The notes under the pieces are model-generated. The model saw only the letters and a list, made by a program, of their open reading frames with translations, made no database searches and was not told the DNA's origin. The position numbers and the translations under genes were made by a program. A DNA stretch of 64,000 bases from Amphiscolops sp. MND2022 (lineage: Eukaryota), in the NCBI GenBank assembly GCA_964187785.1, contig OZ076415.1, positions 68,262,001-68,326,000 of the forward strand, read 5' to 3'. Below are positions 1 to 44,438 of this stretch, piece after piece; positions within the stretch are counted from its first letter, which is position 1; each line of letters opens with the position of its first letter.

Positions 1-356
1 AAGGAAGTTTCAGGAAATGCAAACTAGTCTAAATTCTCAGATATTGGATGTTATAAACACTGCAATTGACACTAGGGTGCTTCCCAGCATCGAAAATGCT
101 GTTAGGAGACAGAATTCAGCGAAAAACACAAGTTTAGACCTTCGGTCAGATGGACTGCATGAAGATACTGCCGCCCCAGGAAATTCTCAGAAGGACCTTC
201 GGTCAAATAGACTGCATCCAGAAAATACCAGCAAATCGTACCAGGATGCTCAGAATGAGTTTCCGAGGTTAATTTCAATCAAAAATAACCAAACAAATCA
301 TCGCAGAGAGAATTCATGTGATTCTCAAGTTAGTGACGATGAATATGGTTATGACA
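1..356 (+). mobile_element. 3' end of an LTR carrying an ORF (LTR-A); 5' part outside the window
   Basis: ORF 17..379 resembles the ORF in LTR-D (LNSQILDVINTAIDTRVLPSI vs VSSQIQRAINEAISDQILPQ). Ends TATGACA at 356, like the other LTR ends here. TSD cannot be checked. Confidence 0.6.
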
Positions 357-734
357 GTGCTGAAACCCTAAAACGCTAGCATAGGGCACATTGGTGAATA
401 GTGCCCACGGAGAACCACAGCTCGAGGGCTGGATGGACTGTTGCATTTATTTGTTGTTACTTTACATTGTTGTAGTACTTAGATTTCGTATGCTCGAGAG
501 GTGCCTTGTTTGAAATTTACCTAATCTCTGTATGTCATTAAATTGACCTTTCGGTGTTAATGAATCCAGTTTTTAGGAGCTAATTAGGCGGTGGTCTTGA
601 GGACGAAGGCAAGCAATATACCCTTTAATTGTTTTTTGTAGCAATAACAGACTAGATTAAGGCTGGTGAGCGTCCCAAAAGACACCCCCCCAGGGACAGG
701 TACCATGCGGGTAAAAATGAGGTAGTATACAGGG

Positions 735-2199
735 TGTTGGAGTCACAGCGCTGCGATGGAGCCGTGGAGCAACTTTAAGCAAGCAGAAGGCAGCAGAACC
801 CACCTAAACTTGAAAAAAAACTTATTTTGTTTTGTACTTCATTTTAAGTTTTGTAACTATTTCATATTTTTCTCACTTTAAAACCTTATAAGTTGATCTT
901 TGTTCCAAATTGGTGATTTACATGTTGCTTTATTACGAAGATTTAAAATTTTAGATTATGTCACCTTTAAATGATCTAACTTTGGAGATACTACATCTCT
1001 ACCATTGTCATTGTGAAGTAATTAACACTTTGCTTACTACCATTATTCGGCATCATGATGTTTAAGGACTGCTGCATATACGCCATGATGCATTTTTCTA
1101 CAATATCATGCGGTATTATACAATTTAAAGACTAACGTCTATACGGCAATATGTGTTTTATGATGAAAGTAATTATGCGACATCCTACGGTTTACCAAAC
1201 AACGTATAGGCTTCACTGTGCGTTGTTGCTTAGAATAATAACGTCATGTAGCTTTATTGTTATGTGCTTTCAAATTACATTCGGAATACCTTTCAGTGCG
1301 GTGTGCTATGATGTGTTTGTAGGGTCCTGCAGACCTGTTAGTCAAATTTTGAATGTCAAGAAAAATGCTATAAATATATATGTATTGACGTCTTCATGAC
1401 GTAATTCTATTTTTGTGTATGACTACCTTCAAAAAAGAGCGTCATGTTTTCAGTTTTGAGACCAAACGTGCGCTAGGAAAATCATTCTTTCACGAATCTA
1501 TCGTCTCCAAGTGCATTTGCCCGATAGATGAATTCTTTTCAACATTTCATTTCTTCAATGGATCTTTGATTTGCTCTAAACAACTGTGCAGAATTCAACT
1601 TTATTCCACCACAAAACTCCATTTTCTCTTGAGGAAAAGTGGGAAACAAGCGGAATAGACGGTCTAGAAAACTAGAAACACTATCTCCAGAGAGGGAAGT
1701 GAACAATACCCAAGTCGAAACGCCTAATACAGGTAACGAGACTGTCACTAATTTTAATGTTAATGTTCAAGAAGGTTTAGGTGAGGGCAATTCTGAAAAT
1801 CAACTAACTGAGCCCTGTCAGATTAGCAACGAAATACAAGTTTGGACTTAAAAATTTGAACAGAAAAACAAGGACAGGATCATGAAAATGAGAAGAAATG
1901 GACAATAAGTTAGAAACCATTCTAAAAGAACTTAGAAGTAACAAAAATGCATTAACAACCTCGCATTCTAGGTCTGAAACGATAGAAACACTCTCAACCT
2001 TCGAGATCCAAGACAGATAGGTCTTATAGGAGTTCGCGCATCAAACGCTGAAAATTCAGACTCTGAAAACGTAGATTTTCCTCTCGGGCCCACTGAAATA
2101 AAAATATCAGACATGGTGCTAAACCTTTGTATAGAAGCGAGTTAGATCTAGATCCTACAATAGTTTCAAATGAGGACTCAGAGGAAGAGGATTATCACA
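735..2199 (+). mobile_element. Solo LTR (LTR-B), 1465 bp, with decayed ORF in its 3' third
   Basis: TG at 735 and CA at 2198-2199, flanked by CAGGG (730-734 and 2200-2204). Start motif TGCGATG..CCGT.G.GCAAC and catcctacggt shared with LTR-C. ORF remnant MGNKRNRRSRKLETLSPERE...EEEDYH (1639-2198) with stops and frameshifts. Confidence 0.85.
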
Positions 2200-2800
2200 C
2201 AGGGACTGTCAGTCCCGGACATAATGTTTTCGTACTAGTCCCTGTTTGTTCGAGTACTAGTCCCGTTTCTGCAAAAATCAGCAAAACACCTCAAAACTTA
2301 CTTTTGTCTCTGTAGTTCAGAAGTACGCAGTTGGTTCAACAAGTCTCTGCTGTGTTGTTTACTAAGTTATGCTAATTCTTTTTCTCTGTGTTAATGGTCT
2401 GCTACTCGAGGAAACTGGGGCTTTGCAAATTCCAAATTTGGGTTTGTGCAAACGAAAAGTCCAAGAAAATGTTCTGCTTGCGTTACTTTTCATATTTCAC
2501 GTTATTTTAGATAGGTAAGATTGATAATTTGTGAAAGTTGGACTCAGCGGGGTTCTCACCTCAGACTACCATTTGCCACCGGTGGAAACCAGTTTGCCGC
2601 TTTCAACACTGGTCCAACTGTGTCCATCGGTGGTCTCAACGCTATGGTTTTCATCGGAAACCCACTGAAAAAAAGTCAATTTTACAACCGAGCTAGTTTT
2701 ACAACACAGTTAAAAATGAGAAGTACTAGTCCCACATACTGAAGTACATAGTTCCGGCCCCTTCAACAGTCTACTCCTATTTAATTTCAGAGCAGTACTG
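2200..2800. repeat. Unclassified repeat with GTACTAGTCCC motifs (target of LTR-B); related segment near 6790-6900
   Basis: gaagtacatagttccggccccttcaacagtct (about 2741-2772) matches gaagtacatagtcccgccccttataacagtct (about 6840-6872). Confidence 0.4.
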
Positions 2801-2860
2801 ACATCTGATGGACTCAGAATGAGATTGAATGGATTGTATTTGAGGACTCTTGTTGGTACC

Positions 2861-5800
2861 TGTCATGAGTACTCTCTAGGTCTTCATTTCTGTTTGGAAA
2901 CCTATGACACGCATCTCTAGAGTTGCTCCTAAACCTGTGATCCAAGCCTTCTTCGGATCTGCATTCCAGTCTTCAAGCCGGGACTTCCCATCTTCTCTCA
3001 GGCATGTGTCCTTGTCCGGATTTTAGAGTAGCTTGTCTCTGGGGCAATATTTGATCACTAATTGCCTCATTTATGGCTCTCTGAATCTGGGAACTTACTG
3101 TGCTCATGAGATCACTCATTTCCATGGTAATTCTTTGATTTAGCTCTTCTGACAACCTGTTAAACTCACTGTCTGAATATGCTTCTCTCCAACTTCGACC
3201 TTTTTGGGCGTAAGTCTTATTTTCTGTTTTATGAGAATTAGATTGAGAATTGCTATTTTTATTCGGCAACATGTTATTACTGGGACTTTCAGGCCTTCTA
3301 CCATAATTATTAGGTTTCGTTCTCGTCCCTTTCTAAATGATTTCCACCTTACATTACATCGAGATTCTCGATATCAGACAACATATCTGCTTCCCTAAAC
3401 TTTCTTGCTTTCTTTTGCTTTCTTGTAGTAGGCATCAAGAAACCCGATAGTAACGATTAAATTATTTTATCGGAAAGTTATTGTGATAATAATGTATTGT
3501 TATATCTACGTCTGACTCATTCTGGAATAATGGTTTTGCAGGATGTTTTAAGTCCTTCATTTCTGGAGCTCTAAGACAATAATCGTCGCTTTCAGAGTCT
3601 GGGTTTTCGTTGTTAGATGCGTGAACTCCTATAGACTTGTCCATTTTGGATCCCGAAGTTTGTGGATCTTGTATTTCGTTAACATCTGACCTTGGATTTG
3701 TCACCATTGATACACTTTTGTTGGATTTTATCTCTTTCAGAATTGCCTCTAATTTGTTATCCATTTCTGCTCTCATCTTTTCTATTCTCTCAGTATTTGT
3801 TTGTTCAACAATTTGTGTCCAAATTTGTATCTCATCACTAATTTGGCTAGACTCTTTCATTAATTCAAATTAGAATTAGTTAAAGTTCTATTACCTGTTT
3901 CTGGTGAATCAACCCTAGTTCCACTGGTTCCTCCTTCGGTTTCTCCTTTTTCCCATTTCGCTCAGTGGAAAACAAGTTTTGTTTGCTGCGGAAGAATTTG
4001 AATTATCTTTTCAAATTGGATATCCAAATATGGAAAGACAATGAAAACTGAAGAAATGTTAACAAAGCCTGAGAGGGTTGTAGAAATTATAACAATTCCT
4101 CTTGACGGGAGTGGTTTTGTTCCGAACCTTGCTTTTTACGGATTCTCTTTTCAAAAATCACAAAAGTGTGACAAGCATTTTTACAAATATCATAGAATTG
4201 TGAAAAAAACCAAAAATAGAATAGCGTCAGCTTTACGTAATTCTATTTATATCGCTTCCACAATGATGCAAATAAAATTAAATAGTTCAAAGACCCTAGA
4301 AAAACACTGTAGAATGACATTTTTAACACCGTAAATGCTGTGATGATGTATAACTACATGACAATCGGATACTGCACTTTTGGCTGAATAACGTATAATA
4401 CCGCATATTCGTTATATCTTGAACCGTAGGATGGCGTATGACGCATATGAACATTCTTATCAAAAAAGGACAAAAATATATTTACAGTACAAGTCAATCC
4501 GTATGATAGCTTGCAGATTTTTTAAGAAAAGCGTTTGGTGACGTATGTCCGTCACGGTACAAACCGCATGACCATGTATGATGATATTGATGAAAATGTA
4601 TGTTACCGCGAATTCTGATCATCTAAAAACGCATATTGACGCATTATTAAAAAACGTATGATGACGCATATTCTAAAGATTAATTTACGCCCAATGGCGT
4701 ATATTCGTAAGACCAATTTATGTATAATGACGCTTTTTTGGTACTTGCAAAACACTCATTGATGCTTATTCGTTGTTCTAATTGTAGAATGACTACGCAT
4801 AATGGAAATTCAAAGTCACAGATTGATCATTCTAATGTAATCTTTTGCACGTGTTATATTTATGAATGAGGTTTCTATGAGCAAGGCAACTTTGGAGGAC
4901 CTAGAAACAGGCCCAAAAATGGATTTATTGCGAAAAATAAACAAAAGTTTACATGACAATGCAAAAGCATCCACAAGATGAATTTTAATGAAGTTTGAAG
5001 TGTTTTTTCATTGAGATTCTTCGAGCGTTCCTTTTTCATAGTTGCACTACGGAATCATCGCATCTAGACAGATGCGACAGTTATGTTTTAATCAACGTTT
5101 TTAACACTTTCAAGTTCGGAGAAAATTGCCTTAAGCACAAGGAGTCAGAAGTATATATATTCCTTGAGGCATGACATTCAAAGTTTTTAGAGATCATGAG
5201 ATCAACATTTTAACAACCATCAATTCCCAGCATCACAAGATTGCCATATATCAAAGTAGTGAAGGTATTTGAGCTGTTATGGACACAAACATTTCAAAAT
5301 GTTTACGTATTAAGATCATATGAATACAAATAACATCAACACTTCAAAGTTTTACCGCGCTCTAGCACCCTAAAAGTGCATTCCTTAGCAGCCACGTGCT
5401 CACACGTGTGGTTAGAGGGTCATCCAAGTCAACGTGATTTTACAATATTACATGAAATTAGCCTGATCCGGCCACTTTATACATGAATATTGTATGACAT
5501 CTATCTAACAAAACATACAAACTTATCGATTAAAATTAACCATCGATAATTAGCAACTAAAAGCAACTAATATGTGCGAAAATAATGGTTGACCATCAAA
5601 AGTACTAAAATTATCAGTATCAACTAATTACAAGAGTAATTAGTATTACTGCAGCATATTACAAGAAAATAGCCGGAACCGCCCAATTGACCGCTGTTCC
5701 TTTTATGTATTGCACAGAAGCGTCAAAAGGCTTTACTCGGCCATTAGCATTAAAGTACTCAATTAACATAGCTAATGGTGAAATATGGTTGGTTCGAACA

Positions 5801-6153
5801 ACGTGCGCAAGTAACGTCGCCGGAATAGCACTTTGTCTCATTCGAATTCGTTTCCTTTACTGTTGATCAGTTGTATTCAAAGTTCTATTGCTTCACGTAT
5901 TTAGTACTGCTTTGCCAATTTGACCCTCAACATGAACATTTCCATTTGAATGTTAACAGACTAATAACAAAGCAAACTAGAACATGTTGGTACTACAAAA
6001 GAGTAATTAACAATGTGAAAATGAGCTAGGGTTCTGTCTAATTAAATGTGTGTCTGTGTCTTAATTTAGAAAGTTCGTGATGTACCGGGTGCGATTTCTT
6101 GTCCTTCAGCCGTAGTACTATTGTCGTGCCGTCATAGGCGGCAGGCTGCGACA
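2861..6153 (-). mobile_element. Solo LTR (LTR-D), about 1690 bp after removing nested LTR-C
   Basis: TG at 2861 and CA at 6152-6153, flanked by GTACC (2856-2860 and 6154-6158). Minus-strand start TGTCGCA is the same as LTR-C. ORF 3272->2862 (SSQIQRAINEAISDQILPQ...DLESTHD) has one internal stop. Confidence 0.8.
3482..5079 (-). mobile_element. Solo LTR (LTR-C), 1598 bp, nested inside LTR-D
   Basis: TG at 3482 and CA at 5078-5079, flanked by GTTAT (3477-3481 and 5080-5084). ORF remnant MGKRRNRR...SQISDEIQIWTQIVEQ...KMRAEMDNKLEAILKEIK...HYYH is homologous to those in LTR-B and LTR-E. Confidence 0.85.
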
Positions 6154-7526
6154 GTACCGCGTATTTCGAAGCAGCAAATTGGGCAGTTTACCAATAAGTT
6201 TACCAAATCATCAAATTTCATTTCCCCAAATGATTTTCTTTTGGTTTTTTCAAAATTATGTGAGAAAAAGCTCTCTTGAGCTCGAATGGTTCCCATTTGT
6301 GCGTTTTTCGGCCATGTGCGACATTTCGGGAAAAATTTTAAATTGAACCCAAGTGTCTCACTTTTGCTGTTTTGTTTTTTCTTCAGTCAAGAAAAAGCCC
6401 TTTTAAGCACTAAGGTTGTTTTTCGGCGGTATACAATTCTCTATCCTCGATTAGTTTTCGATAAAAATTTTTGGAAAATGTTCCAATGCAAAAACGAAGA
6501 TTTATTCTTTGGGATTTTCTTGATAAACAGATGCATGTTCCTTATCATTAAGTTAAATAACTGGGCTGGAATAAATTTAGGCAGCCTTGGAGAGAATACC
6601 AAGAACGAGATAAAAAGGTAAATAACCCCAGGGGCGGGATACTACCCTAGTCTATTCCTTGTAACCCTGGTTGAACTTCACGACGCGGGGTCTCAAAACA
6701 ATTAGCATGATTTTTTCCAGGAATGTAAACTGGAATAATCTTATCTAACACTTTTTGGCTACATGTAATTACAAGGTCCCCTAAGACCTAATAGCAGTAC
6801 AACACAGCCAAAAATGGGAAGTACTTGCTGCAAGTACCGAAGTACATAGTCCCGCCCCTTTTATAACAGTCTTTCCCCCACTTTATCTGGGAGCACTAAT
6901 ACCAGCTGCACTCCTAGACTGAGATTTTTCAAATAGGCTAATACGAACACCAAAGCCTTGCAGTACCCTGAACTAAGTAATTGCTAATTTCTATTTACGA
7001 TGTAAATGTTGCAAAAAACGTAGTGAATAAAAAGAATTGAGGTAGACTGTTTTGATTGGATGAATTGAGTAAGAAGCTACTATACTGTCCCTATTCAAAG
7101 GGGTGGGGGCTGACTATTAAGCCTTTTATCAGTTTTTTTTAATTTTTTCAATTTTATACCACTTTAGACATATCAAAGGTTTTGAGTTTCTTTTAATAGA
7201 AAGACATATCTTTTCTTGGTTGTATTAAATTTCTAAACCGCTCAATGCATGTTTTCCCTGGCTTTTTGAAACTAATTATATGCGGGTCTCATTTCATTTT
7301 TCATTGAATGTTATGCGATAGTCACAAAGAGAAATGCCTTGGACACATATAAATCAAGGATGTTTGTTGATGAAATCAGCTGTTCATTGTACTTTAAAAC
7401 TAGTCTGACTCTATTCAATTTTTAGCCAGCGCTTTTCGAAGAAAAGAGCCGACTATAACAGTGGCTTTTTAAATATATCTGCAAACTTTCTATGGTTATG
7501 GTTACTTAGTTAGCTTAGCAACTTCT

Positions 7527-8135
7527 AACAAGACGGGAACGTCTAAAATCGGCGCTATATCTAAGGCTCAAAAAGCGCAATGTTGTTGAACCTGTAAAAG
7601 GGGGGGCCCTTCGGGCCTTTTGAAAATCCAGTTTGTTGCAAAATATCAAATAAATTAAAGGGGGACCCTTTGGAGACAAAAAAAATCGAAAATTTTTCAA
7701 GAAAAAATCGAATTTTTTTTCAATTTTCGAAACAAAAACGAAACATGAGAATTTTGAACAGTCTCATAGTGCCGAAATACGCAAAAGGGAAGACGCTTTG
7801 GGCTTTTGGGCACTTTAGTTTGCTCCAAAATATCATAAAAAACTTGAAGGTGGGACCCTTTCAAGGCAAAAAAAAATTCGAAAAAAAGTCGCACAGTGCC
7901 GAAAAAAATTGAATGAGGGATCCTTCAGTCTCGTCCGTTTTCGCAAATGCTCGAAAAACTTTCCGGCTAAAGCAAGGAATCGAACTCGTGACCGCTGGGT
8001 TCACCGTAAACCGAGTAAAGTCTGTACTTAAAAGTGGTACATACACAATGAGGTCTGTGGTCTGACGAAAAAAAAGAAAACAAACTAGCCACTGTAATGG
8101 TCGGGCTCTTTTCACTAGAAAACGCCGACTAAAAA
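7527..8135 (+). repeat. Modular interspersed repeat family X (GTCGGCGC subterminal repeat, AAGGGGGACCC units, terminal hairpin)
   Basis: Starts ...aaatcggcgctatatctaaggctcaaaa and ends gtcgggctcttttcactagaaaacgccgactaaaa. Same ends at 31830, 51253 and 63445. B-box-like GAGTTCGATTCC on the minus strand at about 7976-7988. Confidence 0.75.
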
Positions 8136-11100
8136 CCACTTGGCCTAAAGGTTGAGCTGGATTTCTGAGAAGGTCTGAGACGCGGTCAAAGAAGCAGGCG
8201 TATTTTTTTGCACTTTAGACGTGTCCGAAGTAATAATTATCATTTTTTAAATTCAATTTTTGATGTTTCCATTTGGGATAAAAAGCTTTTCGAGTCTTAT
8301 GCCTTTACCTTCAAGTATTTTTCGGCACAGTAATTTTGCAATTATTAACAATAGTGAAATTACAATTTTGCAAAATTATTCACAATAGTGTTTTTTTTGC
8401 ATATTCAAAAGGATGATTGTTAAACATTGTTAAAAACAGCTTGTTAAACATGGCTGTGTGATTTGAGGGTGAAAGTGTGTCTCGATAACTACCCGGGGTG
8501 ATTCTCCATGCAAGCCGACTACCACCACGCAAAAATCTTAGCAGTGATCGTGCCACGATTCGTACTACGATTAGCGTGATATAGTAGTAAGATTGTGCTA
8601 CGAAGCGTATGATAACCTTCGTACAAAGTGTCACGTTAGAAACTCAAAAGAATCATTCCTACACTTTCTAGCGTACTTAGGCGAATACCATAAGTATAAT
8701 CCACCAGTTTGGTTGACCTGTTCGAACATTTGAAAAATTCGAAGTTTGGCAGGCTCAACTGGTAGCTAAAATCTGCCGCGAAGACGGTAAACGACGAGAA
8801 AACCTCCCCCAACCGAGAGAGTGTAGATGAACTGCAGAAAAACCCCGAAAAAAGGCACCAAAGACATTCGTGACGGTGTACAGTGAAAAAACGTCACGCC
8901 GGAAGGCTATTCCCCGAAGAATACCGAAACGTGTCAGAAAAGACTCACAACTGTCATACAGACTACGTTCAAAATCCGGAATTCGCTGAAATTTGGTACC
9001 AGGTGCGATATTTGTGAATATTCTACGTTGTTAGTACAGATATTCAAAGATATGGTGATGTTGGACCTGCTAGGTCCCAATTTCACATCAAATTTTGTCA
9101 ACAGAATGTATTTAAGCTAATTGCCGTTTTTGGACCTCGGAAGTTTGTAGGAAGTCGCAGGAAACTTAGAAATAGTTTTGACGTGCTGTGTGAATGCTTT
9201 TTACGGAGCTCTAAATGTGGGGAGCCTCCTTGTCGGTTGAAAGTCCCCTTATGAGACCCTTTGATGGAGAAAAACTAGACTCTAGGGTTGTGGTAAGGCC
9301 ATGGTCTCCTGTCTCAGCAACCTGGGGAATGTGCCGGCTCTAGAACGTACGCTGCTAGCTTGACGTTACAATGCAAACTAGCAGTATGATTTTGAAATAA
9401 ATCAAACTTCTTAAAATGGTTTCCAAACAGCGGAGACGGCCCCACAATTCAAAGCTGTCACTCCATGAAGAGTTCGTCTACCGTGTTAAATCATAGCAAT
9501 TGACCGCGCTATACTCTCAAGTGCCTAATTGCTAAAATATACTTCTGAATAAGTTCACTTATTTTGGACAAGTTCAAATTTCAAGATGATTTACAATTGA
9601 ATTTTGATGTGCTCAAAGTAAATAAAAAGACTTTTGCAACATAAAGGTGACTTTTAATGAGATGAATATGTTGTGCAATATCATTGTAAGGCTCTATTGT
9701 TTACCGTAAGAGAAATCTTAGGAAAATGCAGTTCCGTAGAGCTATTCGTACTAAGAGCCATAAAACGAGCTCCATGATTTATTCGATTTTGCTACGATCT
9801 TACTACGATAAGATAATCGTGCCGTGAGGTTCAACATGTGCAGCAGTCACCAATCTGTTTTCGAATACATGACCCGCACAAGTTCTTTACAGAGACCTCT
9901 CAATTGTTTGAAGGTCAGAGGTTTTCGAATTAAAAAGAAATAAAAAAACGATTTTAACGGCCAATTTTCACCTGAAAATTAGTAAATTTCATTTTCTGCA
10001 AATCTGGTATTCACTATTGAACTGGTGGGAAATTGAGAAAAATAGCCCTTGATTAGAACGGTTCATTCTCAGAGAAACACTACCAGGTTTCTATGAATCG
10101 CAGTAATCAAAAATGCTAAATAGTTCCAGTCGGCTTCAATTTCAAAGATTTTTGAAGAAAAATTTCTCGTGAAAAACTAAGGAAAAAGCTCAGAAAACTT
10201 CAGGTTGTTTGCTTTTGTTCACCCTCCAACCTTCTCAAAAACAAAATTTTGAAGGTCACTTTTCGAAGTAAAATTTTGCAAGCCCAGACTCATTACTGTT
10301 TTGTTATAAAATTTGTTTCATCGAAACTTTCCTTGCGTGAGAATTCGTAGCCAATATATCTTTAATTGACAATTCATGAAGTGACTTTTCGTCGTTTTGT
10401 TTTTTTTGCATTCTTTGCGGTCGAAGTTTTACAAAAGTTCTATAACATACCTTATCTAAATAACACTAAAATGTTTCAAAGGGTCGTCCTCTGAAATTTC
10501 TAAGCATCTGAAAAATCTAAATAATAATTTTCACTTTCAGCCTCCCTATTCGCAATTTTTCAATTGGGCATTTGCACTTTTAAAATAGCTGTAGAGCTTA
10601 AAAAATGGGTTCCACCCAAAATTTTCAATGAACAGCAATCAATGAGTTGAAGTTTTTTAAAAATATTTGCAAAAACTTCCACTTCGCAATTGAACTTCGT
10701 TTTTTTTCATGTAATTAGTAATTAGTAAAGAAGATTCCTAGTTTGGTAGTCCCATAACCGATGTAGAAAGAACCTTCTGCACTGATTTTGGTAAAAGTGT
10801 TGGAAAGTGTCGTTGGCAAAAATTATTGATTGACCGCTTTGAAAAGAAATAATCAAGTCACCAATCCGGTGCATTCTGTTTCTTTTCAATTTCCGTTGAA
10901 TAAGGTGACATTTTTGAAAGTGATACCATATAATGTCATAATCTCTTCTTCAAATCCTTCTTAGACTCTTTCCCGAATTGATATGTGATGTAAGTCATCT
11001 TTTTTTCCTCGTATGGATCAGATGCTTAAAATTTAATGCAGGGAATCAACCGAGACACCCGTGGAAATAGGAGGAAGATATTCCGAAAATGTGTTTTTCA

Positions 11101-12559
11101 AATGTTTTTTCAAATATTTCATTGGTTATAGAGAACTTGGGAATTGGATCTTTTCTGTTAATCACCCCCGTTTCAGTTGAACGGTCAAGTGAAATTATCA
11201 TTGAATTGATAGCAACAACCAATCAAATTGCACTATTTTACAACTCTAACTGCCACTGAAACTGATCGCTGATACTGGGGGGAATTAAAATTTTCGCGCT
11301 TACTGCGGGGGAATTAACATAAGATCCGAAATTTTTGAGGATAGTTCACAATCCCATAACCCAAGTGGAACTGAGCCAACTCACTTAAAAAAAGCTTTCC
11401 AATGCAGTCCATTTGGGAGTTGGCAGTTAGTTAGACTGGGAGTTGGCGCCATTTCTTGGGATGAGAGCGCCACACCGGCTTCGCGGGCACGGCTTCGCCT
11501 GGCCTTTCAAATGCCGGTCGAACTCTCAGCTGAAGCTTCATTGAAAAAGCTTCTATATGCGTTTTCAACGGTAGCAAACTGTGTTACTAGATACGTGTTA
11601 CGAGTTTGCTTGACTAATTCACACGTCCTTCACGTTACAGATTTCAGGTTGAAAAGTTTTTTTGACAGGTTTCCACTTTTCTCTAATTCCGCTCAATGAT
11701 CTTAATCCGCAATTTGTTATTACACTGTGCCTCAAAATCCGCAATTAACTCGATGCACTGTTTGACTGGAATATGGTTCGCTCTCGTTTTACGGAAAATA
11801 CACCTTACACTTGATGATAAATTCCACTTTTGCGGCATATGTATCGTAATGGTGTTAAGGAGCAAAGGCTAATTTTCTGAAAAACTTATTTTGCAATTTC
11901 TCACATTTTTCTAGTACTTTTTTGCCTGTGGTTCGAACAACAAACTATACTGACACAAATAACAACTCGCCTCAGAGAGTGCAATAGATTCTCGATAAGA
12001 AAGACAAATTTTTGTTTTCCTGTATGCTTTTTTTATTGTGAAATGAATTGCTGTCCTCGTTTGAGAACGAAATCACTGTCGAGTTTTTGGCAGCCCGGAT
12101 CTGTGAATTCACACGGCTCCTGTACAAATAGTTTCTTATATGAATCAATAACATCTGCGGTCGCCATGATTTGGACTCTCATAAAATTGAATAAAATCTT
12201 CTGAACAAAATACTAACTTCAAAACTTTTACAGCAAAATTTATTAATTTTTGTTGATTACAGGTATTTTTCTTTGAAAATTCCAAAGTCAACATCGAAGT
12301 ATTTGGAAACTATGCCTTTCTACTGAATTTTCCCCTCGCTTAGCCAGTTCAAATTCCAACAGTTTCGAGCCCTGAAAACTTTTTTTTGAAACTCACTCAA
12401 AAATTTTTAAATGAAACTCACTTAAGCAAGACAGTGCAGAAAAAAACCTGACTGCATTGGGTTAAGATAGGGCAAAAACTTCAGTTTCGAGAAAACTCAT
12501 ATAAGTATAGTGCAGAAAGGACTCAAGCTTTCAAAAAATACGTACCTCTGAGTACCTCC

Positions 12560-13218
12560 TCAATCACTTTTTAAAATACCATTCTGGTATCAACTGTGTC
12601 TTCTAATTTTTATTTCCATTATCCGATAAAGAATTTCAACACTGTCTTTGCACTGTAAACTTGTTTTCACTTGAGAGAATTTGGGAATAGACGTAATAGA
12701 AGGTCCAGAAAAATAGAAACTCCGTCCCCGGAAAGGGGAACAAACGACACTCAAGTAGAAACCCAAACCCAGGTTATATGACTTCAATATTGAATTCGAA
12801 GATCAAGGGAATTTAGGAGAAAACAACCTGGGTTCGCAAATGACTGAACCTAATCCAATTAGTAACGAAATCCCAGGGTAGACCCAAATTTCGCGAGCAA
12901 AAGAACAACGGCAGGATCGGGAAAATGAGACAAGAGATGGAAGATAAATTTGAAGCAATTCTTGAGGAAGTAAGATCCGACGAGAGCACTTCAACAATGA
13001 TAAATCCTGTGTCTGAAATCAACGAAATACAAAATTAACAACCAAGGGGATCTAAAAATGAAAATTCTCTGAGAGGTCACGCACCAGACAACGAAAATAT
13101 TGATTCAAAAATGAAGATTATCCTCTTAGGGCTTCAGTAAAGCCATTGTTTCTAAATGAACTAGATATTAACGATACTGTAATCATAAATGAAAACCCTA
13201 ATGGAGAGGAATATCACA
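12560..13218 (+). mobile_element. 5'-truncated LTR (LTR-E), same family as LTR-B and LTR-C
   Basis: Translates in pieces to GNRRNRRSRKIETPSPER...KMRQEMEDKFEAILEEVR...ENPNGEEYH and ends TATCACA at 13218. No matching TSD found; left boundary approximate. Confidence 0.7.
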
Positions 13219-13578: not shown

Positions 13579-13650
13579 TGACGTCATAGGGAAATAAAGA
13601 GTAACGGAAGTAGCTGAGACTCTTTTACAACACTTCCTGAGTCAGGAAGT
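13579..13650. promoter_or_regulatory. Cluster of CRE/ETS/AP-1-like motifs at the start of the triplicated unit
   Basis: TGACGTCA at 13579, CGGAAGT at 13605, palindrome ACTTCCTGAGTCAGGAAGT at 13632-13650. Motif match only. Confidence 0.3.
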
Positions 13651-16600
13651 AAGAAACAACATCAAAAAAGTTTCTTTGACATTCATTTCATTCTTTCATC
13701 GATTAATTTATTGACCTCAAATTTTCACTTCTCCAGTATACAGCTTGAATATACCTCGAATAGTGAGTGATACAGGTCAAAAAATTGCTAAAGTTCAAAT
13801 GAGCGAAATTTTTGTTTCATGGCTTGATAAAATCACTCTCGATCTCTAAAATTCAATTCTAGCATTTAATAATCGTGTACTTTGGTCAATGGAAACATTT
13901 CCAAGAAGCCTCAAAATTTCCATGAGTAAGAAAATAATAGAAATCTGCCAATATGATTGTTTTCTTAGTATCTGAGAAAATGATTAGGAACAACCATTCA
14001 TGTATTATACCTGCATGTATACAAGTACGAAAGATGAAAACATTCAAATAGATAAAAATAGGCGAAACAATGCTGTATTTTTTTTTCTCTTTAAATAAAG
14101 CAGTTTCCAAAAAAAAATTCATCGCAAAAATTTCACTCCGAAGGTCGTTCTCGCGTTACAACCACCACAAAAGTTTTCCATAATCTGTCAAAACCTTGGG
14201 ATATATCACCCTAACATTCCTGCTTTTTCACAGGAGAAGAAAAGGTCGATGAAAAGAGTCGCTAACAGTACGAGGTTTTTTGCCCAAAAGAGCGCTTGCC
14301 GCAATATTGTTTCAACAACTCAACTCTGTAAATATTCCCGCATCAATTTTATTGCGACATTTTTCGTTCAATATTCATAGCTCTATCTATCCTGCATAAA
14401 TTTGCAAGAAGCCAAAGGTAAAGACTGTTTTGACATGTCCTTTTCAGCTGAATTGCGCAATATGTTAGCTCACTGTAATTGCGCGTTGGCAAAATATAAG
14501 TAAAATCACACCAAACTTCACGTCCGAAAACAGCAAATTAGACACATTTATGACCAAAATTGTATCAGACGCAATGCCAGAGTCATTTTCCTCTGAAATT
14601 GTAAAATCTTAAGGTTTTCAGATATACCCAAAGTGCAAATCATAAACTTTACAATCTCCCCCCAAAATACTTGATCGTGATAATGATGCCTGGAATTTAT
14701 CCCTTCTAAACTTCTATATCCTCCCATGGGCGTGATTTTTGCTGGTCAGAATTTTCGAGAGTGGACTGAGGGTGGTTGGGTTGTCTTATATATATTTGCG
14801 AATACAGACTTAACGATGATCATTTTCATTTATTAAAAAATTCAAAGGGCATGAAAGATGGAAATTTGTGTCGAAATGAGGCAAATAAGATAAGAAAAGT
14901 TAACAGAAGTTTCCGATCCCAGCCGGCGCTGAGTCAGGAAGTAAGAAACAACATCAAAAAAGTTTCTTTGACATTCATTTCATTCTTTCATCGATTAATT
15001 TATTGACCTCAAATTTTCACTTCTCCAGTATACAGCTTGAATATACCTCGAATAGTGAGTGATACAGGTCAAAAAATTGCTAAAGTTCAAATGAGCGAAA
15101 TTTTTGTTTCATGGCTTGATAAAATCACTCTCGATCTCTAAAATTCAATTCTAGCATTTAATAATCGTGTACTTTGGTCAATGGAAACATTTCCAAGAAG
15201 CCTCAAAATTTCCATGAGTAAGAAAATAATAGAAATCTGCCAATATGATTGTTTTCTTAGTATCTGAGAAAATGATTAGGAACAACCATTCATGTATTAT
15301 ACCTGCATGTATACAAGTACGAAAGATGAAAACATTCAAATAGATAAAAATAAGCGAAACAATGCTGTATTTATTTTTCTCTTTAAATAAAGCAGTTTCC
15401 AAAAAAAATTCATCGCAAAAATTTCACTCCGAAGGTCGTTCTCGCGTTACAACCACCACAAAAGTTTTCCATAATCTGTCAAAACCTTGGGATATATCAC
15501 CCTAACATTCCTGCTTTTTCATAGGAGAAGAAAAGGTCGATGAAAAGAGTCGCTAACAGTACGAGGTTTTTTGCCCAAAAGAGCGCTTGCCGCAATATTG
15601 TTTCAACAACTCTGTAAATATTCCCGCATCAATTTTATTGCGACATTTTTCGTTCAATATTCATAGCTCTATCTATCCTGCATAAATTTGCAAGAAGCCA
15701 AAGGTAAAGACTGTTTTGACATGTCCTTTTCAGCTGAATTGCGCAATATGTTAGCTCACTGTAATTGCGCGTTGGCAAAATATAAGTAAAATCACACCAA
15801 ACTTCACGTCCGAAAACAGCAAATTAGACACATATCTGACCAAAATTGTATCAGACGCAATGCCAGAGTAATTTTCCTCTGAAATTGTAAAATCTTAAGG
15901 TTTTCAGATATACCCAAAGTGCAAATCATAAACTTTACAATCTCCCCCCAAAATACTTGATCGTGATAATGATGCCTGGAATTTATCCCTTCTAAACTTC
16001 TATATCCTCCCATGGGCGTGATTTTTGCTGGTCAGAATTTTCGAGAGTGGACTGAGGGTGGTTGGGTTGTCTTATATATATTTGCGAATACAGACTTAAC
16101 GATGATCATTTTCATTAATTAAAAAATTCAAAGGGCATGAAAGATGGAAATTTGTGTCGAAATGAGGCAAATAAGATAAGAAAAGTTAACAGAAGTTTCC
16201 GATCCCAGCCGGCGCTGAGTCAGGAAGTAAGAAACAACATCAAAAAAGTTTCTTTGACATTCATTTCATTCTTTCATCGATTAATTTATTGACCTCAAAT
16301 TTTCACTTCTCCAGTATACAGCTTGAATATACCTCGAATAGTGAGTGATACAGGTCAAAAAATTGCTAAAGTTCAAATGAGCGAAATTTTTGTTTCATGG
16401 CTTGATAAAATCACTCTCGATCTCTAAAATTCAATTCTAGCATTTAATAATCGTGTACTTTGGTCAATGGAAACATTTCCAAGAAGCCTCAAAATTTCCA
16501 TGAGTAAGAAAATAATAGAAATCTGCCAATATGATTGTTTTCTTAGTATCTGAGAAAATGATTAGGAACAACCATTCATGTATTATACCTGCATGTATAC

Positions 16601-17503
16601 AAGTACGAAAGATGAAAACATTCAAATAGATAAAAATAAGCGAAACAATGCTGTATTTATTTTTCTCTTTAAATAAAGCAGTTTCCAAAAAAATTCATCG
16701 CAAAAATTTCACTCCGAAGGTCGTTCTCGCGTTACAACCACCACAAAAGTTTTCCATAATCTGTCAAAACCTTGGGATATATCACCCTAACATTCCTGCT
16801 TTTTCATAGGAGAAGAAAAGGTCGATGAAAAGAGTCGCTAACAGTACGAGGTTTTTTGCCCAAAAGAGCGCTTGCCGCAATATTGATTCAACAACTCTGT
16901 AAATATTCCCGCATCAATTTTATTGCGACATTTTTCGTTCAATATTCATAGCTCTATCTATCCTGCATAAATTTGCAAGAAGCCAAAGGTAAAGACTGTT
17001 TTGACATGTCCTTTTCAGCTGAATTGCGCAATATGTTAGCTCACTGTAATTGCGCGTTGGCAAAATATAAGTAAAATCACACCAAACTTCACGTCCGAAA
17101 ACAGCAAATTAGAAACATTTATGACCAAAATTGTATCAGACGCAATGCCAGAGTCATTTTCCTCTGAAATTGTAAAATCTTAAGGTTTTCAGATATACCC
17201 AAAGTGCAAATCATAAACTTTACAATCTCCCCCCAAAATACTTGATCGTGATAATGATGCCTGGAATTTATCCCTTCTAAACTTCTATATCCTCCCATGG
17301 GCGTGATTTTTGCTGGTCAGAATTTTCGAGAGTGGACTGAGGGTGGTTGGGTTGTCTTATATATATTTGCGAATACAGACTTAACGATGATCATTTTCAT
17401 TTATTAAAAAATTCAAAGGGCATGAAAGATGGAAATTTGTGTCGAAATGAGGCAAATAAGATAAGAAAAGTTAACAGAAGTTTCCGATCCCAGCCGGCGC
17501 TGA
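13637..17503. repeat. Tandem triplication of a ~1.29-kb unit (13637-14928, 14929-16214, 16215-17499)
   Basis: Each unit starts CTGAGTCAGGAAGTAAG and ends GATCCCAGCCGGCG. The array ends in a fourth CTGA. Copies differ by a few substitutions and small indels. Confidence 0.97.
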
Positions 17504-18618
17504 TGACCGATTAGAGAATATATACACTTGGTCCAATCTACAAATGGTAATAAGGGAAAAAAGCGGTGAAATGGCGCAAAAAATGACTGAGGTTTTTTTT
17601 TGCGAATCAGAAGGAAATATTTTCAACAGAAGACATTGCCTGTTAAAATGAGTCTAATGAAATTCAGAAAAAGTGATACATGATATTAAGATTAATACCA
17701 AAAAAAGATATAACAAGATGCCCGCTAAGCCCCGGGTCATTTCCGCGTAGAACTATTACGGCAACAATTTGTTTAAAGGCTCGACCGTATCCAGTTATCT
17801 ACGAAACTGCAAAAGAGTTTGAAAAGTTTGAAACAATTGACCTGCTAAAGAAATCTGCACTATTTTGTACAAGAGTATGATAGGTAGCTAGTTATGTTTT
17901 TAAACCACGTGGAAACTCAAACCGGTTAGCGTGAAGCTATGGTTTTGAAAGGTTTTACTCAAAATCACCAAGAAGGTCTGACTGATCAGCGTAGCACTTT
18001 TTGTTTTCTCCGCCAAAGTGTTTTTTTTGTCAGGACCATATAAAACTTAGCTAGGAATGTAGGACTTGCTCAAGGCCAAACAATGATGAGTTGAGAAAAG
18101 TTCGAACCTAATTCCGCAGCAATAAAGGCCCAAACCCCTAACCACCTAACCAAGGTTCTTCGAAATTGAACGTTTTTTACACCATTCGGTTTACTTTTTG
18201 CAATTTTTGGATTGAGTTTTTCTTTGGTAAAAGAGCTAATTGAGAGGTTAAGTTTTTGTTTATCAATTTTTTGGTTTTTCATTCCCACGGACACAAACGA
18301 AAATTGTTCAAAAAACACGAAATTGTTAATTCTTGCCTTTTTGCCCTTTATGGTCAATTAAGGCTTTTTCAAATAGCAAATTTTTGCAAAAAATCAAAAC
18401 CTAAAATCAAAACAAAATTGTAGGAAAAACTGGCGAAAATTAAATGTTCCTTTTTTGCATTTTGGCTTTTTTGGGCATACTGTGGACTAGTCGACAGTTT
18501 TTGAAGAGCTCTTCAATTTTCAAACAGAGTTAGAATAAAGATTTTGTTTCTCATCTGGCAAAGAAAGAAATAGCATCTGATTCCTCAGTGTTTCGTAATT
18601 TTATTGATAACTCTAGAT

Positions 18619-18785
18619 GAGAAAAAGTGCATTCCTTGCAAGGATCTTGCAAGATCCTCGCTTTTAATGCAATCATTGAAAATTCTTGTGACTAATGTAT
18701 TCTTTGCAACAATCTTACAAGGAATTGTGATCCTTGCAAGATCTTCCAAGAAGCACTTTCTTTGAAAAAAAAACGCATTTCCACC
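18619..18785. mobile_element. Short degenerate relative of the CTTGCAAG-repeat MITE
   Basis: gcattccttgcaaggatcttgcaagatcc matches the TIR of the element at 46532-47371. Confidence 0.55.
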
Positions 18786-19652
18786 AATAATTGATAAAAA
18801 TCGTCTTTATGTATTCAGGATCTGTTTAGACCACCAAAAATTTTGCCCAGGGAAAATTTCAGTATCGTTTAGAAGCTAGAATGTCACTTGATTGTACCAG
18901 TTACGCTGAGCGAAAAGTTTCTGATGAAATATTTAATTTGCTGAAATGTCTATTACGTCATTGGGCGAGACAATTTGGCGGCGTGTAGACAGAAAAATGA
19001 CTGGTTTTGTCTGACTCTTGACACTGAAAGCAATGAATTCAAACATTGTCTGTTACTCTAGGCAGCAAAAAGACGATCAAATGGTGAAAATAGGTTCTAT
19101 GTTTCCATGCAGAAGTCTCAGATTTGCTTGTCAGTTTGTCAAATTCAATCATTTCTACTGTGCTTCCTTCCCAAGGTTCCGAAATATTGATAGTGGGAGA
19201 ATGTTCAAAGAAAAATACCGTAGAGAAGAGAGTGAAAGGAAAGAAAATGAACCCCACGGACTTATATTGAACTACTCGGAATACATTTTACCCTACAACA
19301 TAGGAGCTATAGTATAAATTATAGATGAAAAATGTATTTTTATGAATGGATCCTTCCATGGAAATATCTTTTTCATCTATAATTTACGTCTTGAAAAATT
19401 ATCACCAATAAATAAACGTATCGAATATCATTGCCACTGTGAGAATTTTCAAAGATTTTAAATACTTTTATCTCTATGTGAAAAAAACAAGCCCTGGATA
19501 AATTTGGAAACTGGATTCCAAGCGAAACTGGAATTCTGAATGGTTTCGAAAGCATGACATACGTGAACCTCTCATGTACTTACTTCTTGAAATTTGAAAC
19601 CATTACTGCGAAGTTTTTGACAACAGATTTAGTCGATAACTTGACGACACCG

Positions 19653-39196: not shown

Positions 39197-40044
39197 TGTA
39201 ACGGCTGCTTGATCCCTTCTGTTGACCAAACGTTACGCCGCCCTGAATTCGGTGCACGGCACTGCGGATCGTTACCGAACACTGCTTGCTTCTTAGATTA
39301 AAAGGACTGTATCTTGACTTAGTAGGATCCAATGATCCCGAATTGCACTTCTTCCTTGTCTCTTAACACGTCCAACTCTCCACAAGTTGAGAGTAACTAA
39401 CTTAGTCGCCCTAAGTCTTTGGCGAAAAGTCGAAAAGAGGTGAAGAAATGAATTGAGAATATGTGTGCTCCTGAGACCCGATTTTAACACAGCTTTCCAA
39501 TCAATTTGTGCCTATCTAACAATGGTATACATATCGTTTTCAATTACTCGATAAATATGAGTCAAAATATGAAGTATAAATAAATGACATTTAAGTGAAT
39601 TATTAAAGTTATTGGCTATGTAAACAAACCATAGTGTGGGTATAGCATGTTAGTTAGGTGGGCTCTAAAGCGTGTTTACACAATGTAAATAACATAAATT
39701 TCAACAGAGTTGCATTCTAATGTGGTCATATAGGTAAATAACAAAGTTTACATTTTCGGCTCAATGACCTTGAATATCACACATGTGAGGGGTAAAGGGG
39801 GTTATAATGGGGTAATGACCTTGAAACTTAGCCGGTGTGTTCGTGTTAGGTGCTTGCATATGTGTAACAAGTTTCAAGGCTATATGACTAACAGTCTTCG
39901 AGAAAACCCATTGGGGGGTTAGAGATTTGTGATGATTGGATTTTCTTCAAATTTTCATTTAAGTTTTTTAGAGTTTAAGTTCTTGTTTCTCAACCAACGC
40001 GTTCTGAATCGAGTTTTTTTCCTTGCTGATGACTGGCGCCAACA
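39197..40044 (-). repeat. BEL/Pao 3' LTR (848 bp)
   Basis: TGTAACGGCTGC...GGCGCCAACA. Roughly 20 differences from the other LTR by eye. The pol ORF ends inside it. Confidence 0.97.
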
Positions 40045-44417: not shown

Positions 44418-44438
44418 TGGTGGAAAAGTGTAAATTCG

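Follow-up and report, generated by a model that had tools for sequence, protein, structure and literature searches.

Can a long terminal repeat (LTR) encode the start of a retrotransposon's own Gag protein, so that the reading frame leaves the repeat at its terminal CA and continues through the primer-binding site into gag? This question is raised by five repeats in a 64,000-nucleotide stretch of the Amphiscolops sp. MND2022 genome (assembly GCA_964187785.1, contig OZ076415.1, positions 68,262,001 to 68,326,000, forward strand; hereafter the window, i.e. the whole stretch that was analysed). The original prediction was that these repeats are LTRs of two families, each with an open reading frame (ORF) or its remnant leaving the terminal CA in the same codon phase, that in intact elements the last A of the LTR and the TG of the primer site would form an in-frame ATG, and that every solo or 3′ LTR would be a promoter plus an open-ended ORF reading into host DNA, a possible source of chimeric proteins.

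The first step is to ask whether the repeats are as described, and they are: all five ends read exactly as had been claimed, and the observation is confirmed (Table 1). The family motifs are also real, with family 1 reading MG.RRNRR...KMR.EM.DK.EAIL.E and family 2 reading SQI..AI...I..LP. Two points need correction. The end at 2861 belongs to family 2 and the end at 3482 to family 1, the letters C and D having been swapped relative to the original list of ends. Furthermore, the ORFs of B, C and E are riddled with stops and frameshifts and D keeps only part of its frame, leaving A as the only intact copy, i.e. four of the five window copies are decayed.

Table 1. Features of the window (coordinates within the 64,000-nt stretch; TSD, target-site duplication; a slash marks the end of an LTR)
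Feature	Position	Strand	Description
LTR-A	1-356	+	Last 356 bp of a young family-2 LTR, cut by the window start; intact ORF (open frame of 229 aa at this locus) leaving the LTR at ...GGT TAT GAC A/ and reading 7 codons into the flank (stop at 377-379); about 40 genomic copies at 91-99% identity, nearly all ending at base 356, many in pairs about 14.9 kb apart
Left TSD of LTR-B	730-734		CAGGG; right copy at 2200-2204
LTR-B	735-2199	+	Complete solo LTR of family 1 (1465 bp, TGTTGG...ATCACA), ending TAT CAC A; aligns to positions 1-1441 of the LTR of the complete element L074; the genome-wide copies listed end at 2199; ORF remnant broken by stops and frameshifts
Promoter-like block of LTR-B	1369-1415	+	Conserved TATAAA box followed by two TGACGT half-sites, about 270 nt upstream of the ORF start (~1640); inverted match to 4211-4252 in LTR-D; function inferred only
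Gag N-terminal region of LTR-B	1640-2199	+	Decayed LTR-coded region, corresponding to LTR positions 883-1441 of L074
LTR-C, 3′ segment	2861-3481	-	Coding part of a family-2 solo LTR (whole LTR 2861-6153, split by LTR-D); ATG (MPTTRKQK...) at about 3432, compared with family-2 ORFs starting MPSTRKQKAKE; ends CAT GAC A at 2861, as do genomic copies; ORF broken; right TSD copy GGTAC at 2856-2860
LTR-D	3482-5079	-	Complete solo LTR of family 1 (1598 bp) inserted into LTR-C, ending TAT CAC A at 3482; aligns to the L079-type LTR over 1.6 kb; TSD ATAAC at 5080-5084 and 3477-3481; last 132 codons of the ORF still open (3462-3860), MGKRRNRR start remnant at 3956
LTR-C, 5′ segment	5085-6153	-	U3 side of the family-2 solo LTR, starting TGTCGCAGCC at 6153; left TSD copy GGTAC at 6154-6158; without LTR-D, LTR-C is about 1.69 kb; most genomic matches start sharply at the position corresponding to window 6152-6158 (query 743-749), several contiguous with matches to the 3′ segment, and the TG dinucleotide at 6153 fixes the start
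LTR-E	12625-13218	+	Last ~600 bp of an old family-1 LTR, the only recognisable part, ending TAT CAC A at 13218; ORF heavily broken

These ends are true LTR ends. In the genome, copies of each type stop sharply at exactly these bases with unrelated flanks (in most copies, in the case of B), and homology among twenty 5′ junction loci begins sharply at one base. In some copies of B the end is followed by TGGTGAC..., with a first-look count of 1743 candidates. It could be argued that the repeats are not LTRs at all but fragments of some other repeat, such as the 5′ ends of a non-LTR element, or exons of a multigene family, since matches to LTR-B begin at variable query positions, which superficially recalls 5′-truncated LINEs. 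However, these variable starts are simply loss of alignment in the fast-evolving U3, and this reading is refuted by the TG...CA termini (B, C and D begin TGT and end ACA), by the perfect 5-bp TSDs of B, C, D and a complete element, by the identical copies at both ends of a gag-pol element and by the tRNA primer site directly after the upstream copy.

The parent elements belong to two sister lineages of Ty3/gypsy-like elements of about 15.9 kb, with LTRs of 1.44-1.69 kb. The complete family-1 element that was characterized (L074/L075) is 15,902 bp long, with 1441-bp LTRs (TGTCGG...CACA) that are 99.2% identical, the TSD ATTCA and a primer-binding site directly after CA. A Pfam search of its ORFs found zf-CCHC in Gag, gag-asp_proteas (137-225) followed by RVT_1 (535-689) in ORF2, and RT_RNaseH/RT_RNaseH_2 followed by Integrase_H2C2 and rve in ORF3, with no other Pfam family scoring in the pol ORFs. 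The gene order is gag, protease, reverse transcriptase, RNase H and integrase, followed by about 7 kb carrying antisense ORFs. The sequence before the 3′ LTR, ...AAAAGTGCGGGAC/TG, is purine-rich but interrupted, and would make only a weak polypurine tract.

The next question is what happens at the junction, and here all three conditions that had been named beforehand as capable of refuting the reading were examined, without any of them doing so. The first concerned a spacer between CA and the primer site. Full-length copies read CACA/TGGTGACAGGAG with no spacer, and a family-2-type copy reads GACA/TGTTGACAGGAG. The 12-nt site TGGTGACAGGAG is the exact complement of the 3′ end (the last 9 nt plus an added CCA) of 48 copies of an 82-nt class II tRNA gene on one contig of the same genome (C11), whereas a reversed-pattern control gave 0 hits; the anticodon loops, read by eye, give TAG or AAG (Leu).

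The second condition concerned the frame relative to gag. In the complete element the ATG lies at position 883 of the 1441-bp LTR, so that the frame begins 559 nt (186 codons) before the LTR's end in family 1, and about 650 nt (about 215 codons) before it in family 2. It crosses the junction as ...CAC A/TG GTG ACA GGA G..., and the primer-binding site itself therefore encodes Met-Val-Thr-Gly. In four of thirteen examined copies one open frame of 563-583 codons runs from the LTR-internal ATG (MGNKRNRRSRR...) through ...EEDYH/MVTGANRQ... to the end of a Gag with a CCHC knuckle, which from that ATG is 555-560 aa long (555-563 aa across the several copies that show this frame). A database search returned 2169 related proteins, many of them full-length (555-565 aa) at 97, 80 or 62% identity, and all seven that were retrieved keep the same start and junction.

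The same arrangement is seen in LTR pairs of the window's own genome, where 5′ copies are open for 552-615 aa and 3′ copies for 196-272 aa. Specifically, family-1 5′ copies are open for 552-591 aa and 3′ copies for 196-262 aa. In family 2, the upstream copy is open for 583-615 aa in 21 of the 44 LTR pairs listed (mostly 14.6-15.7 kb apart), and the downstream copies are open for 147-266 aa, mostly 223-266, including sublineages only 55-60% identical. A family-2 junction reads GACA/TGTTGACAGGAGCCAAC, giving ...GYD/MLTGAN..., followed by a Gag (38-52% identical) and a protease (56%) homologous to those of family 1. The identical codon phase of the two families is thus not an independent coincidence but reflects common descent, as both use the same tRNA-Leu primer site (the anticodon being read by eye, as above) and have homologous Gag and protease.

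The third condition was a dN/dS near 1 across the LTR ORF. The LTR-coded part gave values of 0.10-0.28 between subfamilies and 0.15-0.26 among close intact copies, compared with 0.83-1.8 in shifted frames and 0.02-0.05 in internal gag. The values between subfamilies are approximate, because synonymous sites are saturated (dS 1.1 to above 2), but purifying selection acts in that frame only. At the nucleotide level, the coding part of the LTR is 59-64% identical with 2-4% gaps, while the non-coding LTR is 45-56% identical with 14-28% gaps. Chance is also excluded as the cause of the open frame: a shuffled 186-codon LTR segment has 12.5 stops on average (0 of 20,000 shuffles were open; Poisson P about 4e-6), and the other five frames of the real sequence have 5-25 stops.

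These results bear directly on an alternative in which Gag is translated from the junction ATG, or further downstream, and the long upstream frame is untranslated leader that merely happens to be open. The junction ATG is indeed invariant (M187) and in frame, but any LTR element with CA/TGG has it, so its invariance says nothing about its use as a start. The upstream frame, in contrast, is open for 186-215 codons in hundreds of diverged copies, is under selection, and nearly lacks the indels that are common elsewhere in the LTR. Its start motif MGN[KR]R[NS]RR[ST]RR is conserved in all seven aligned subfamily representatives, and the ATG context is kept, with G at +4 in all five subfamilies compared at the DNA level and a purine at -3 in four (C in the fifth). 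This alternative is therefore very unlikely.

A related possibility, which is compatible with the main explanation, is that two Gag isoforms are made, a long one from the LTR ATG and a short one from the junction Met, by leaky scanning or from a second downstream transcription start, which would be analogous to glyco-Gag and Gag of murine leukaemia virus. The LTR-coded part is far less constrained than core Gag (37-66% against 73-88% amino-acid identity, in addition to its higher dN/dS) and is predicted to be mostly disordered, as expected of an optional extension. However, the context of the upstream ATG disfavours leaky scanning over 186 codons, and no data bear on the two isoforms; this possibility is unlikely.

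The interpretation in the original prediction, that the ORF runs through the LTR/primer-site junction into gag, is thus supported, and we hold it with high confidence. The sequence analysis demonstrates the LTR structure and TSDs, the primer site without spacer, the start of the gag frame inside the LTR and its continuation into a CCHC Gag, and the selection on the LTR-coded part; about one third of Gag is duplicated in every LTR and stays behind in every solo LTR. What the RNA and protein do is inferred from sequence alone, as no RNA runs are indexed for this organism: that transcription starts just downstream of a conserved TATA/TGACGT block about 270-300 nt upstream of the ATG (the block is conserved in three of four diverged subfamilies), that the coding stretch would then lie in R/U5 and be present in the genomic RNA, that translation starts at the LTR ATG, that the product carries an N-terminal Gag extension, and that, as both LTRs carry the segment after reverse transcription, a 3′ or solo LTR is a promoter plus an ORF that runs a few to about 75 codons into flanking DNA. 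The conserved block and the selection on the frame are the only indirect evidence that the LTR start codon is in the mRNA and is used. AATAAA/ATTAAA hexamers are not conserved in position among subfamilies, so the R/U5 boundary cannot be placed, and in some subfamilies a hexamer lies inside the ORF and would have to be ignored in the 5′ LTR.

With respect to what such an extension may do, an AlphaFold model predicts one long helix at residues 61-105 (pLDDT about 90) with disorder at 1-60 and 107-226, although overall confidence is low (mean pLDDT 49). No globular helical matrix fold is seen in this model, the extension has no Pfam hits, and a language-model comparison gave no look-alike above chance. 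In family 1 it starts M-G-N-[KR]-R-[NS]-R-R, with an invariant Gly2 in a sequence that fits a PROSITE-type myristoylation pattern and is followed by a basic cluster, and it may therefore act like a retroviral matrix or membrane-targeting and assembly region. Family 2 starts MPSTRKQKAKE, with a basic cluster but no Gly2, and the LTR-coded domains of the two families show no detectable homology to each other, so a common matrix-like function is only weakly supported.

The remaining claim of the original prediction, that solo LTRs are sources of chimeric proteins, is structurally possible, but no evidence bears on it. In its broader form, the LTR ORF would also work as a free-standing gene, with solo and 3′ LTRs expressing the Gag N-terminal fragment fused to a flank-encoded tail or, after splicing, to host exons, and the product regulating the element in trans or creating new host proteins. 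The 3′ LTR of the complete element does carry the same TATA block and ATG, with an ORF of 186+14 codons (the last 14 read into the flank), 120 of the 150 best family-1 matches and most family-2 matches have no stop inside the LTR-coded stretch, and gene callers already report many such short proteins. On the other hand, there is no transcript evidence, read-outs are short (a few to about 75 codons of flank), most of the window copies are decayed, and the purifying selection is fully explained by the Gag role. The free-standing gene is therefore unlikely. Equally improbable on present evidence, but of considerable interest if true, is that the thousands of solo and 3′ LTRs are self-contained expression units (a TATA/CRE-like promoter, a start codon in good context and a 186-215-codon ORF) releasing free Gag N-terminal fragments with short flank-encoded tails, which contain the long predicted helix and, in family 1, a myristoylation-type basic N-terminus. 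These could act in trans on full-length Gag, as a copy-number control analogous to the truncated Gag p22 of Ty1, and occasionally splice into host exons to make chimeric proteins.

LTRs are normally treated as non-coding promoter and terminator modules, whereas here one third of Gag is LTR-encoded and is kept so by selection in two deeply diverged lineages with thousands of copies. U5 (as inferred), the integrase end (CA) and the tRNA primer site all serve a second role as coding sequence. Each insertion carries the first 186-215 Gag codons twice, and each solo LTR keeps a putative promoter with an open-ended ORF. Annotation pipelines that mask LTRs or call genes naively will mis-annotate such sequences, and many short orphan proteins in public databases are such LTR ORFs. 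The system also offers a natural test of how far a retroelement can move coding sequence into its LTR, and of how the 5′ copy of any poly(A) signal is bypassed.

Parts of this arrangement have counterparts in other elements. Giant plant Ty3/gypsy elements such as Ogre are also very large and have coding capacity beyond gag-pol, but the Ogre extra ORF is internal, between the LTR and gag, and the elements described here also carry antisense ORFs in their 3′ region. Retroviral LTRs can contain coding sequence (MMTV sag in U3; nef, bel or tax ends overlapping the 3′ LTR), but those ORFs sit in U3 and are read from the 3′ end of the genome as separate accessory genes, while the ORF here lies downstream of the TATA block, runs to the last base of the LTR and is the 5′ end of gag itself, continuous with it; it is not a separate accessory gene of the MMTV sag type, confined to U3 and not joined to gag. 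Glyco-Gag of murine leukaemia virus is likewise an in-frame N-terminal extension of Gag encoded upstream of the conventional Gag region, but it is encoded in the leader downstream of the LTR and primer site and uses a CUG start.

In Ty1 and Ty2 of Saccharomyces cerevisiae (Ty1/copia), the GAG start codon lies in U5 of the 5′ LTR, downstream of the transcription start, the primer-binding site lies inside the gag coding sequence and the frame crosses the junction. However, Ty1 has only about a dozen codons in a 334-bp LTR and uses initiator Met rather than Leu tRNA, compared with 186-215 codons in a 1.44-1.69-kb LTR of a Ty3/gypsy-like animal element. The closest described case that was found is Tca5 of Candida albicans (Ty5-like, Ty1/copia), in which about 101 codons lie in the LTR, described as an ‘unusually deep inset’, and the primer site directly follows the LTR (PMC4139406). 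Tca5 is a low-copy fungal element with few solo LTRs and an unknown start site in vivo, whereas here the inset is twice as deep, is conserved under measured selection across deeply diverged lineages and is present in thousands of LTR copies of an animal genome. The arrangement therefore remains an extension, albeit an extreme one, of the Ty1/Tca5 principle, and not a new kind of element.

The window (C7:68262001-68326000) belongs to a 1.07-Gb animal assembly and contains, apart from the LTRs, other mobile elements such as a Tc1-like transposase and a large gag-pol element, while no tRNA genes were found within it. The gag-pol element lies in a GC-richer block (44% against 36%), has a 484-aa coiled-coil-rich ORF upstream of gag, and was taken to be BEL/Pao-like from the integrase and RT motifs only. 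The original prediction had described five LTRs of two families whose ORF leaves the terminal CA in the same codon phase, and this observation held, since all five ends are present as written. The family letters it gave for the ends at 2861 and 3482 were, however, swapped: the GAC ends (356, 2861) are family 2, and the CAC ends (2199, 3482, 13218) are family 1. Genome searches show that these are real element termini. More specifically, all of the listed copies of LTR-B (out of 1743 first-look candidates) that reach the 3′ end of the LTR stop at window base 2199 (within a few bases), copies of the repeat at 2861-3481 stop at 2861, and copies of LTR-A stop at 356. Most of the copies whose flanks were read have unrelated downstream sequence.

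The boundaries of LTR-B were obtained by mapping a complete LTR onto the window. LTR-D is a family-1 LTR that sits inside the family-2 LTR-C, whose multi-copy homology begins and ends sharply, and B, C and D are therefore solo LTRs in a nested pile. LTR-A is cut by the window start, and only the last ~600 bp of LTR-E are recognisable, its 5′ boundary and TSD not having been found when they were looked for. Only A has an intact ORF; D keeps 132 codons, and B, C and E are badly broken. A direct repeat of about 70 bp at 79-80% identity lies just outside both ends of solo LTR-C, which may therefore have inserted into, or next to, another repeated element. Coordinates of these and other features are collected in the table.

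Coordinates of the LTRs and of other features in the window, in the rest of the genome and in public contigs
Sequence	Coordinates	Strand	Feature
Window	end at 356		LTR-A, family 2
Window	735-2199		LTR-B, family 1, flanked by CAGGG on both sides
Window	6153 to 2861		LTR-C, family 2, flanked by GGTAC
Window	5079 to 3482	minus	LTR-D, family 1, flanked by ATAAC on both sides
Window	end at 13218		LTR-E, family 1
Window	2700-2772 and 6798-6872		direct repeat outside both ends of LTR-C
Window	13637-16578		three tandem copies of a unit of about 1290 bp at 99-100% identity, starting about 420 bp downstream of LTR-E
Window	21706-25309		long A-rich stretch (AT skew +0.3) made of tandem units, translating to a repeated motif of about 37 aa (…KHRKHSCKK.PVEGFC.NIENIHAKSH.LKDFAKTSKTFIQKVTSW…) that is open over 147-164 codons in several pieces
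Window	35067-36974		Tc1-like transposase
Window	39990-46251	minus	BEL/Pao-like gag-pol element
L074 (family-1 element)	16740-20563	minus	antisense ORFs
L031 (family-1 element)	7919-8988		antisense ORFs
Contig C11	6,004,600-6,078,858	all on one strand	cluster of 48 tRNA genes
Contig C11	32448478 and 32463035		family-1 pair with long open frames in both LTR copies
Contig C12	26840871-26843876		head-to-tail array of partial LTRs
L080 (public contig)	790-3529		head-to-tail array of partial LTRs

In family 1, some genomic copies of the LTR are followed by TGGTGACAGGAGCC... instead of unrelated DNA. Twenty loci holding this junction share homology that begins at a single upstream base, which defines a 1.44-1.47-kb LTR starting TGTCGGAGCC. 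In four of thirteen examined copies, one uninterrupted frame runs from an ATG 186 codons before the LTR end (MGNKRNRRSRR...), passes through ...EEDYH/MVTGANRQ... (the slash marking the junction) and reaches the end of a zinc-knuckle Gag, while the other copies have the same frame, broken at scattered points. A protein search with this Gag returned 2169 relatives, many of which are full-length (555-565 aa) at 97, about 80 and about 62% identity, and all seven that were retrieved have the same start and junction.

A contig of a public assembly (ERZ25074608 was the assembly used) holds a complete family-1 element (L074/L075). No 3′ LTR was found within 10 kb in L031 or L074, but these elements are simply longer, and the LTR was found at +14.46 kb. 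The complete element is 15,902 bp long, with 1441-bp LTRs differing at 12 positions and the TSD ATTCA; TGG follows CA directly, the ATG is at LTR position 883, and TATAAA is at 586, followed by TGACGT half-sites. Its gag encodes 555 aa and is followed by two pol ORFs with protease, RVT_1, RNase H, Integrase_H2C2 and rve. Between integrase and the 3′ LTR lie about 7 kb with three antisense ORFs (361, 173 and 420 aa), which have no Pfam match and are conserved at about 95% between two copies. In the 3′ LTR the same LTR-internal ORF reads 14 codons into host DNA before a stop.

The primer site is real. The tRNA was predicted from the site and searched for in the genome, and the pattern hit 48 tandemly clustered, near-identical 82-nt class II tRNA genes on contig C11, spaced a few hundred bases apart, with no hits for the reversed control. 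Their 3′ end plus CCA is the exact complement of TGGTGACAGGAG, and their anticodon loops, read by eye, give TAG, AAG or CAA-like, that is, Leu. Among subfamilies only these 11-12 bases are conserved after the LTR, which fits a short primer site, and in the protein they are the invariant residues M187-V188-T189-G190.

For family 2, the genome was searched with the LTR-A peptide and the open-frame lengths reported for the matches were used. Among 44 same-strand pairs of matches that were picked out, mostly 14.6-15.7 kb apart, the upstream (5′) copy is open for 583-615 aa in 21, whereas the downstream copies are open for 147-266 aa, mostly 223-266, and the pattern also holds in sublineages only 55-60% identical to LTR-A. 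Representatives of the LTR ORF start MPSTRKQKAKE... and have about 215 codons before ...GYD, and the window's copy C has the same start at about 3432. One public contig, which is itself rearranged and is the only one in which the family-2 junction was read, shows GACA/TGTTGACAGGAGCCAAC, giving ...GYD/MLTGAN..., followed by regions 38-52% (Gag) and 56% (protease) identical to family 1. The same test on family 1 in the window's genome gives 552-591 aa for 5′ copies and 196-262 aa for 3′ copies, with one exception, a pair on contig C11 in which the downstream copy is also open for 641 aa (against 565 aa upstream), which may be two elements in tandem sharing an LTR. Partial LTRs, including the ORF, also occur as head-to-tail arrays (three copies with a 1221-bp period on contig C12, and a 1154-bp period in a public contig), which is not the usual solo or paired arrangement. 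The two families are thus sister lineages with the same primer tRNA, and the identical exit phase is inherited, not convergent.

Several lines of evidence bear on whether the LTR frame is coding. A shuffled 186-codon segment has 12.5 stops on average, none of 20,000 shuffles was open, and the other five frames of the real LTR have 5-25 stops. Nei-Gojobori estimates for the LTR-coded part give dN/dS of 0.10-0.28 between subfamilies, although synonymous sites are saturated at that distance and these ratios are approximate. For this reason closer pairs and shifted-frame controls were added: among closely related intact copies dN/dS is 0.15-0.26, with dS of 0.05-0.14, and the same alignments read in the two shifted frames give 0.83-1.8, while internal gag gives 0.02-0.05. 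Among young, intact family-1 copies (the gag of L057, L064 and L074), synonymous divergence is two to ten times higher in the LTR-coded part (dS 0.05-0.14) than in internal gag (0.004-0.05), for which possible causes are LTR exchange between lineages or faster mutation of the promoter-proximal region. At the nucleotide level the coding part of the LTR is 59-64% identical and almost gap-free, whereas the rest of the LTR is 45-56% identical with 14-28% gaps, apart from a conserved TATA/TGACGT block. The ATG has G at +4 in all five subfamilies examined and a purine at -3 in four of them. The original prediction, in which the final A of the LTR and the TG of the primer site form an in-frame ATG so that the ORF continues into gag, is therefore supported: the three outcomes it had named as refutations (a spacer between CA and the primer site, an ORF out of frame with gag, and dN/dS near 1) were tested and did not occur.

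What the LTR-coded part may do can only be inferred. The AlphaFold model is poor overall (mean pLDDT 49), but it does give one confident long helix at residues 61-105 within otherwise disordered sequence, and the helical capsid-like region is predicted to begin only after the junction. Family 1 has an invariant Gly2 in a myristoylation-type context, followed by a run of arginines, while family 2 has a basic N-terminus without Gly2. The two domains are not detectably homologous, as neither BLASTP nor profile-profile comparison found anything beyond the junction, and the eye-catching similarity between KMREEMDNKLESILKEI and RKLEEMKSDLNSHILEVI is not statistically supported. There were no Pfam hits and no look-alike above chance in the protein atlas, and an exhaustive search with the family-2 part returned mainly short proteins, which are taken to be LTR ORFs (seven of them were inspected). 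The domain is read here as a fast-evolving N-terminal Gag extension with a basic, possibly membrane-directed tip and an oligomerising helix, functionally comparable to the matrix/p12 region of retroviral Gag, but that function is the weakest part of the account.

With regard to mechanism, the analysis shows that every 3′ or solo LTR carries the ORF open at its end (badly broken as it is in the window's B, C and E). That transcription starts after the TATA block, so that the coding stretch lies in R/U5, is by contrast an inference from sequence alone, as is any expression of the frame, because the four sequencing runs found with the window are of one sample and none is recorded as RNA. From the standard reverse-transcription scheme it follows that minus-strand strong-stop DNA primed by tRNA-Leu copies that stretch, and that it is regenerated in both LTRs. 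Poly(A) hexamers are not positionally conserved and hence do not place the R/U5 boundary.

A coding start inside the LTR is already known from yeasts. Phrase searches for gag starting in the LTR returned only the description of Tca5, with none in animals or in gypsy-type elements, although these searches cover open-access text only and rely on exact phrases. Ty1 and Ty2 place about a dozen Gag codons in U5, with the primer site inside GAG. Tca5 of Candida albicans has an ORF starting at base 382 of a 685-bp LTR, which the review calls an unusually deep inset, with its start site unknown (PMC4139406). The present elements extend this principle, in that the inset is twice as deep as in Tca5, is shown to be under selection, is shared by two old lineages and is present in thousands of copies.
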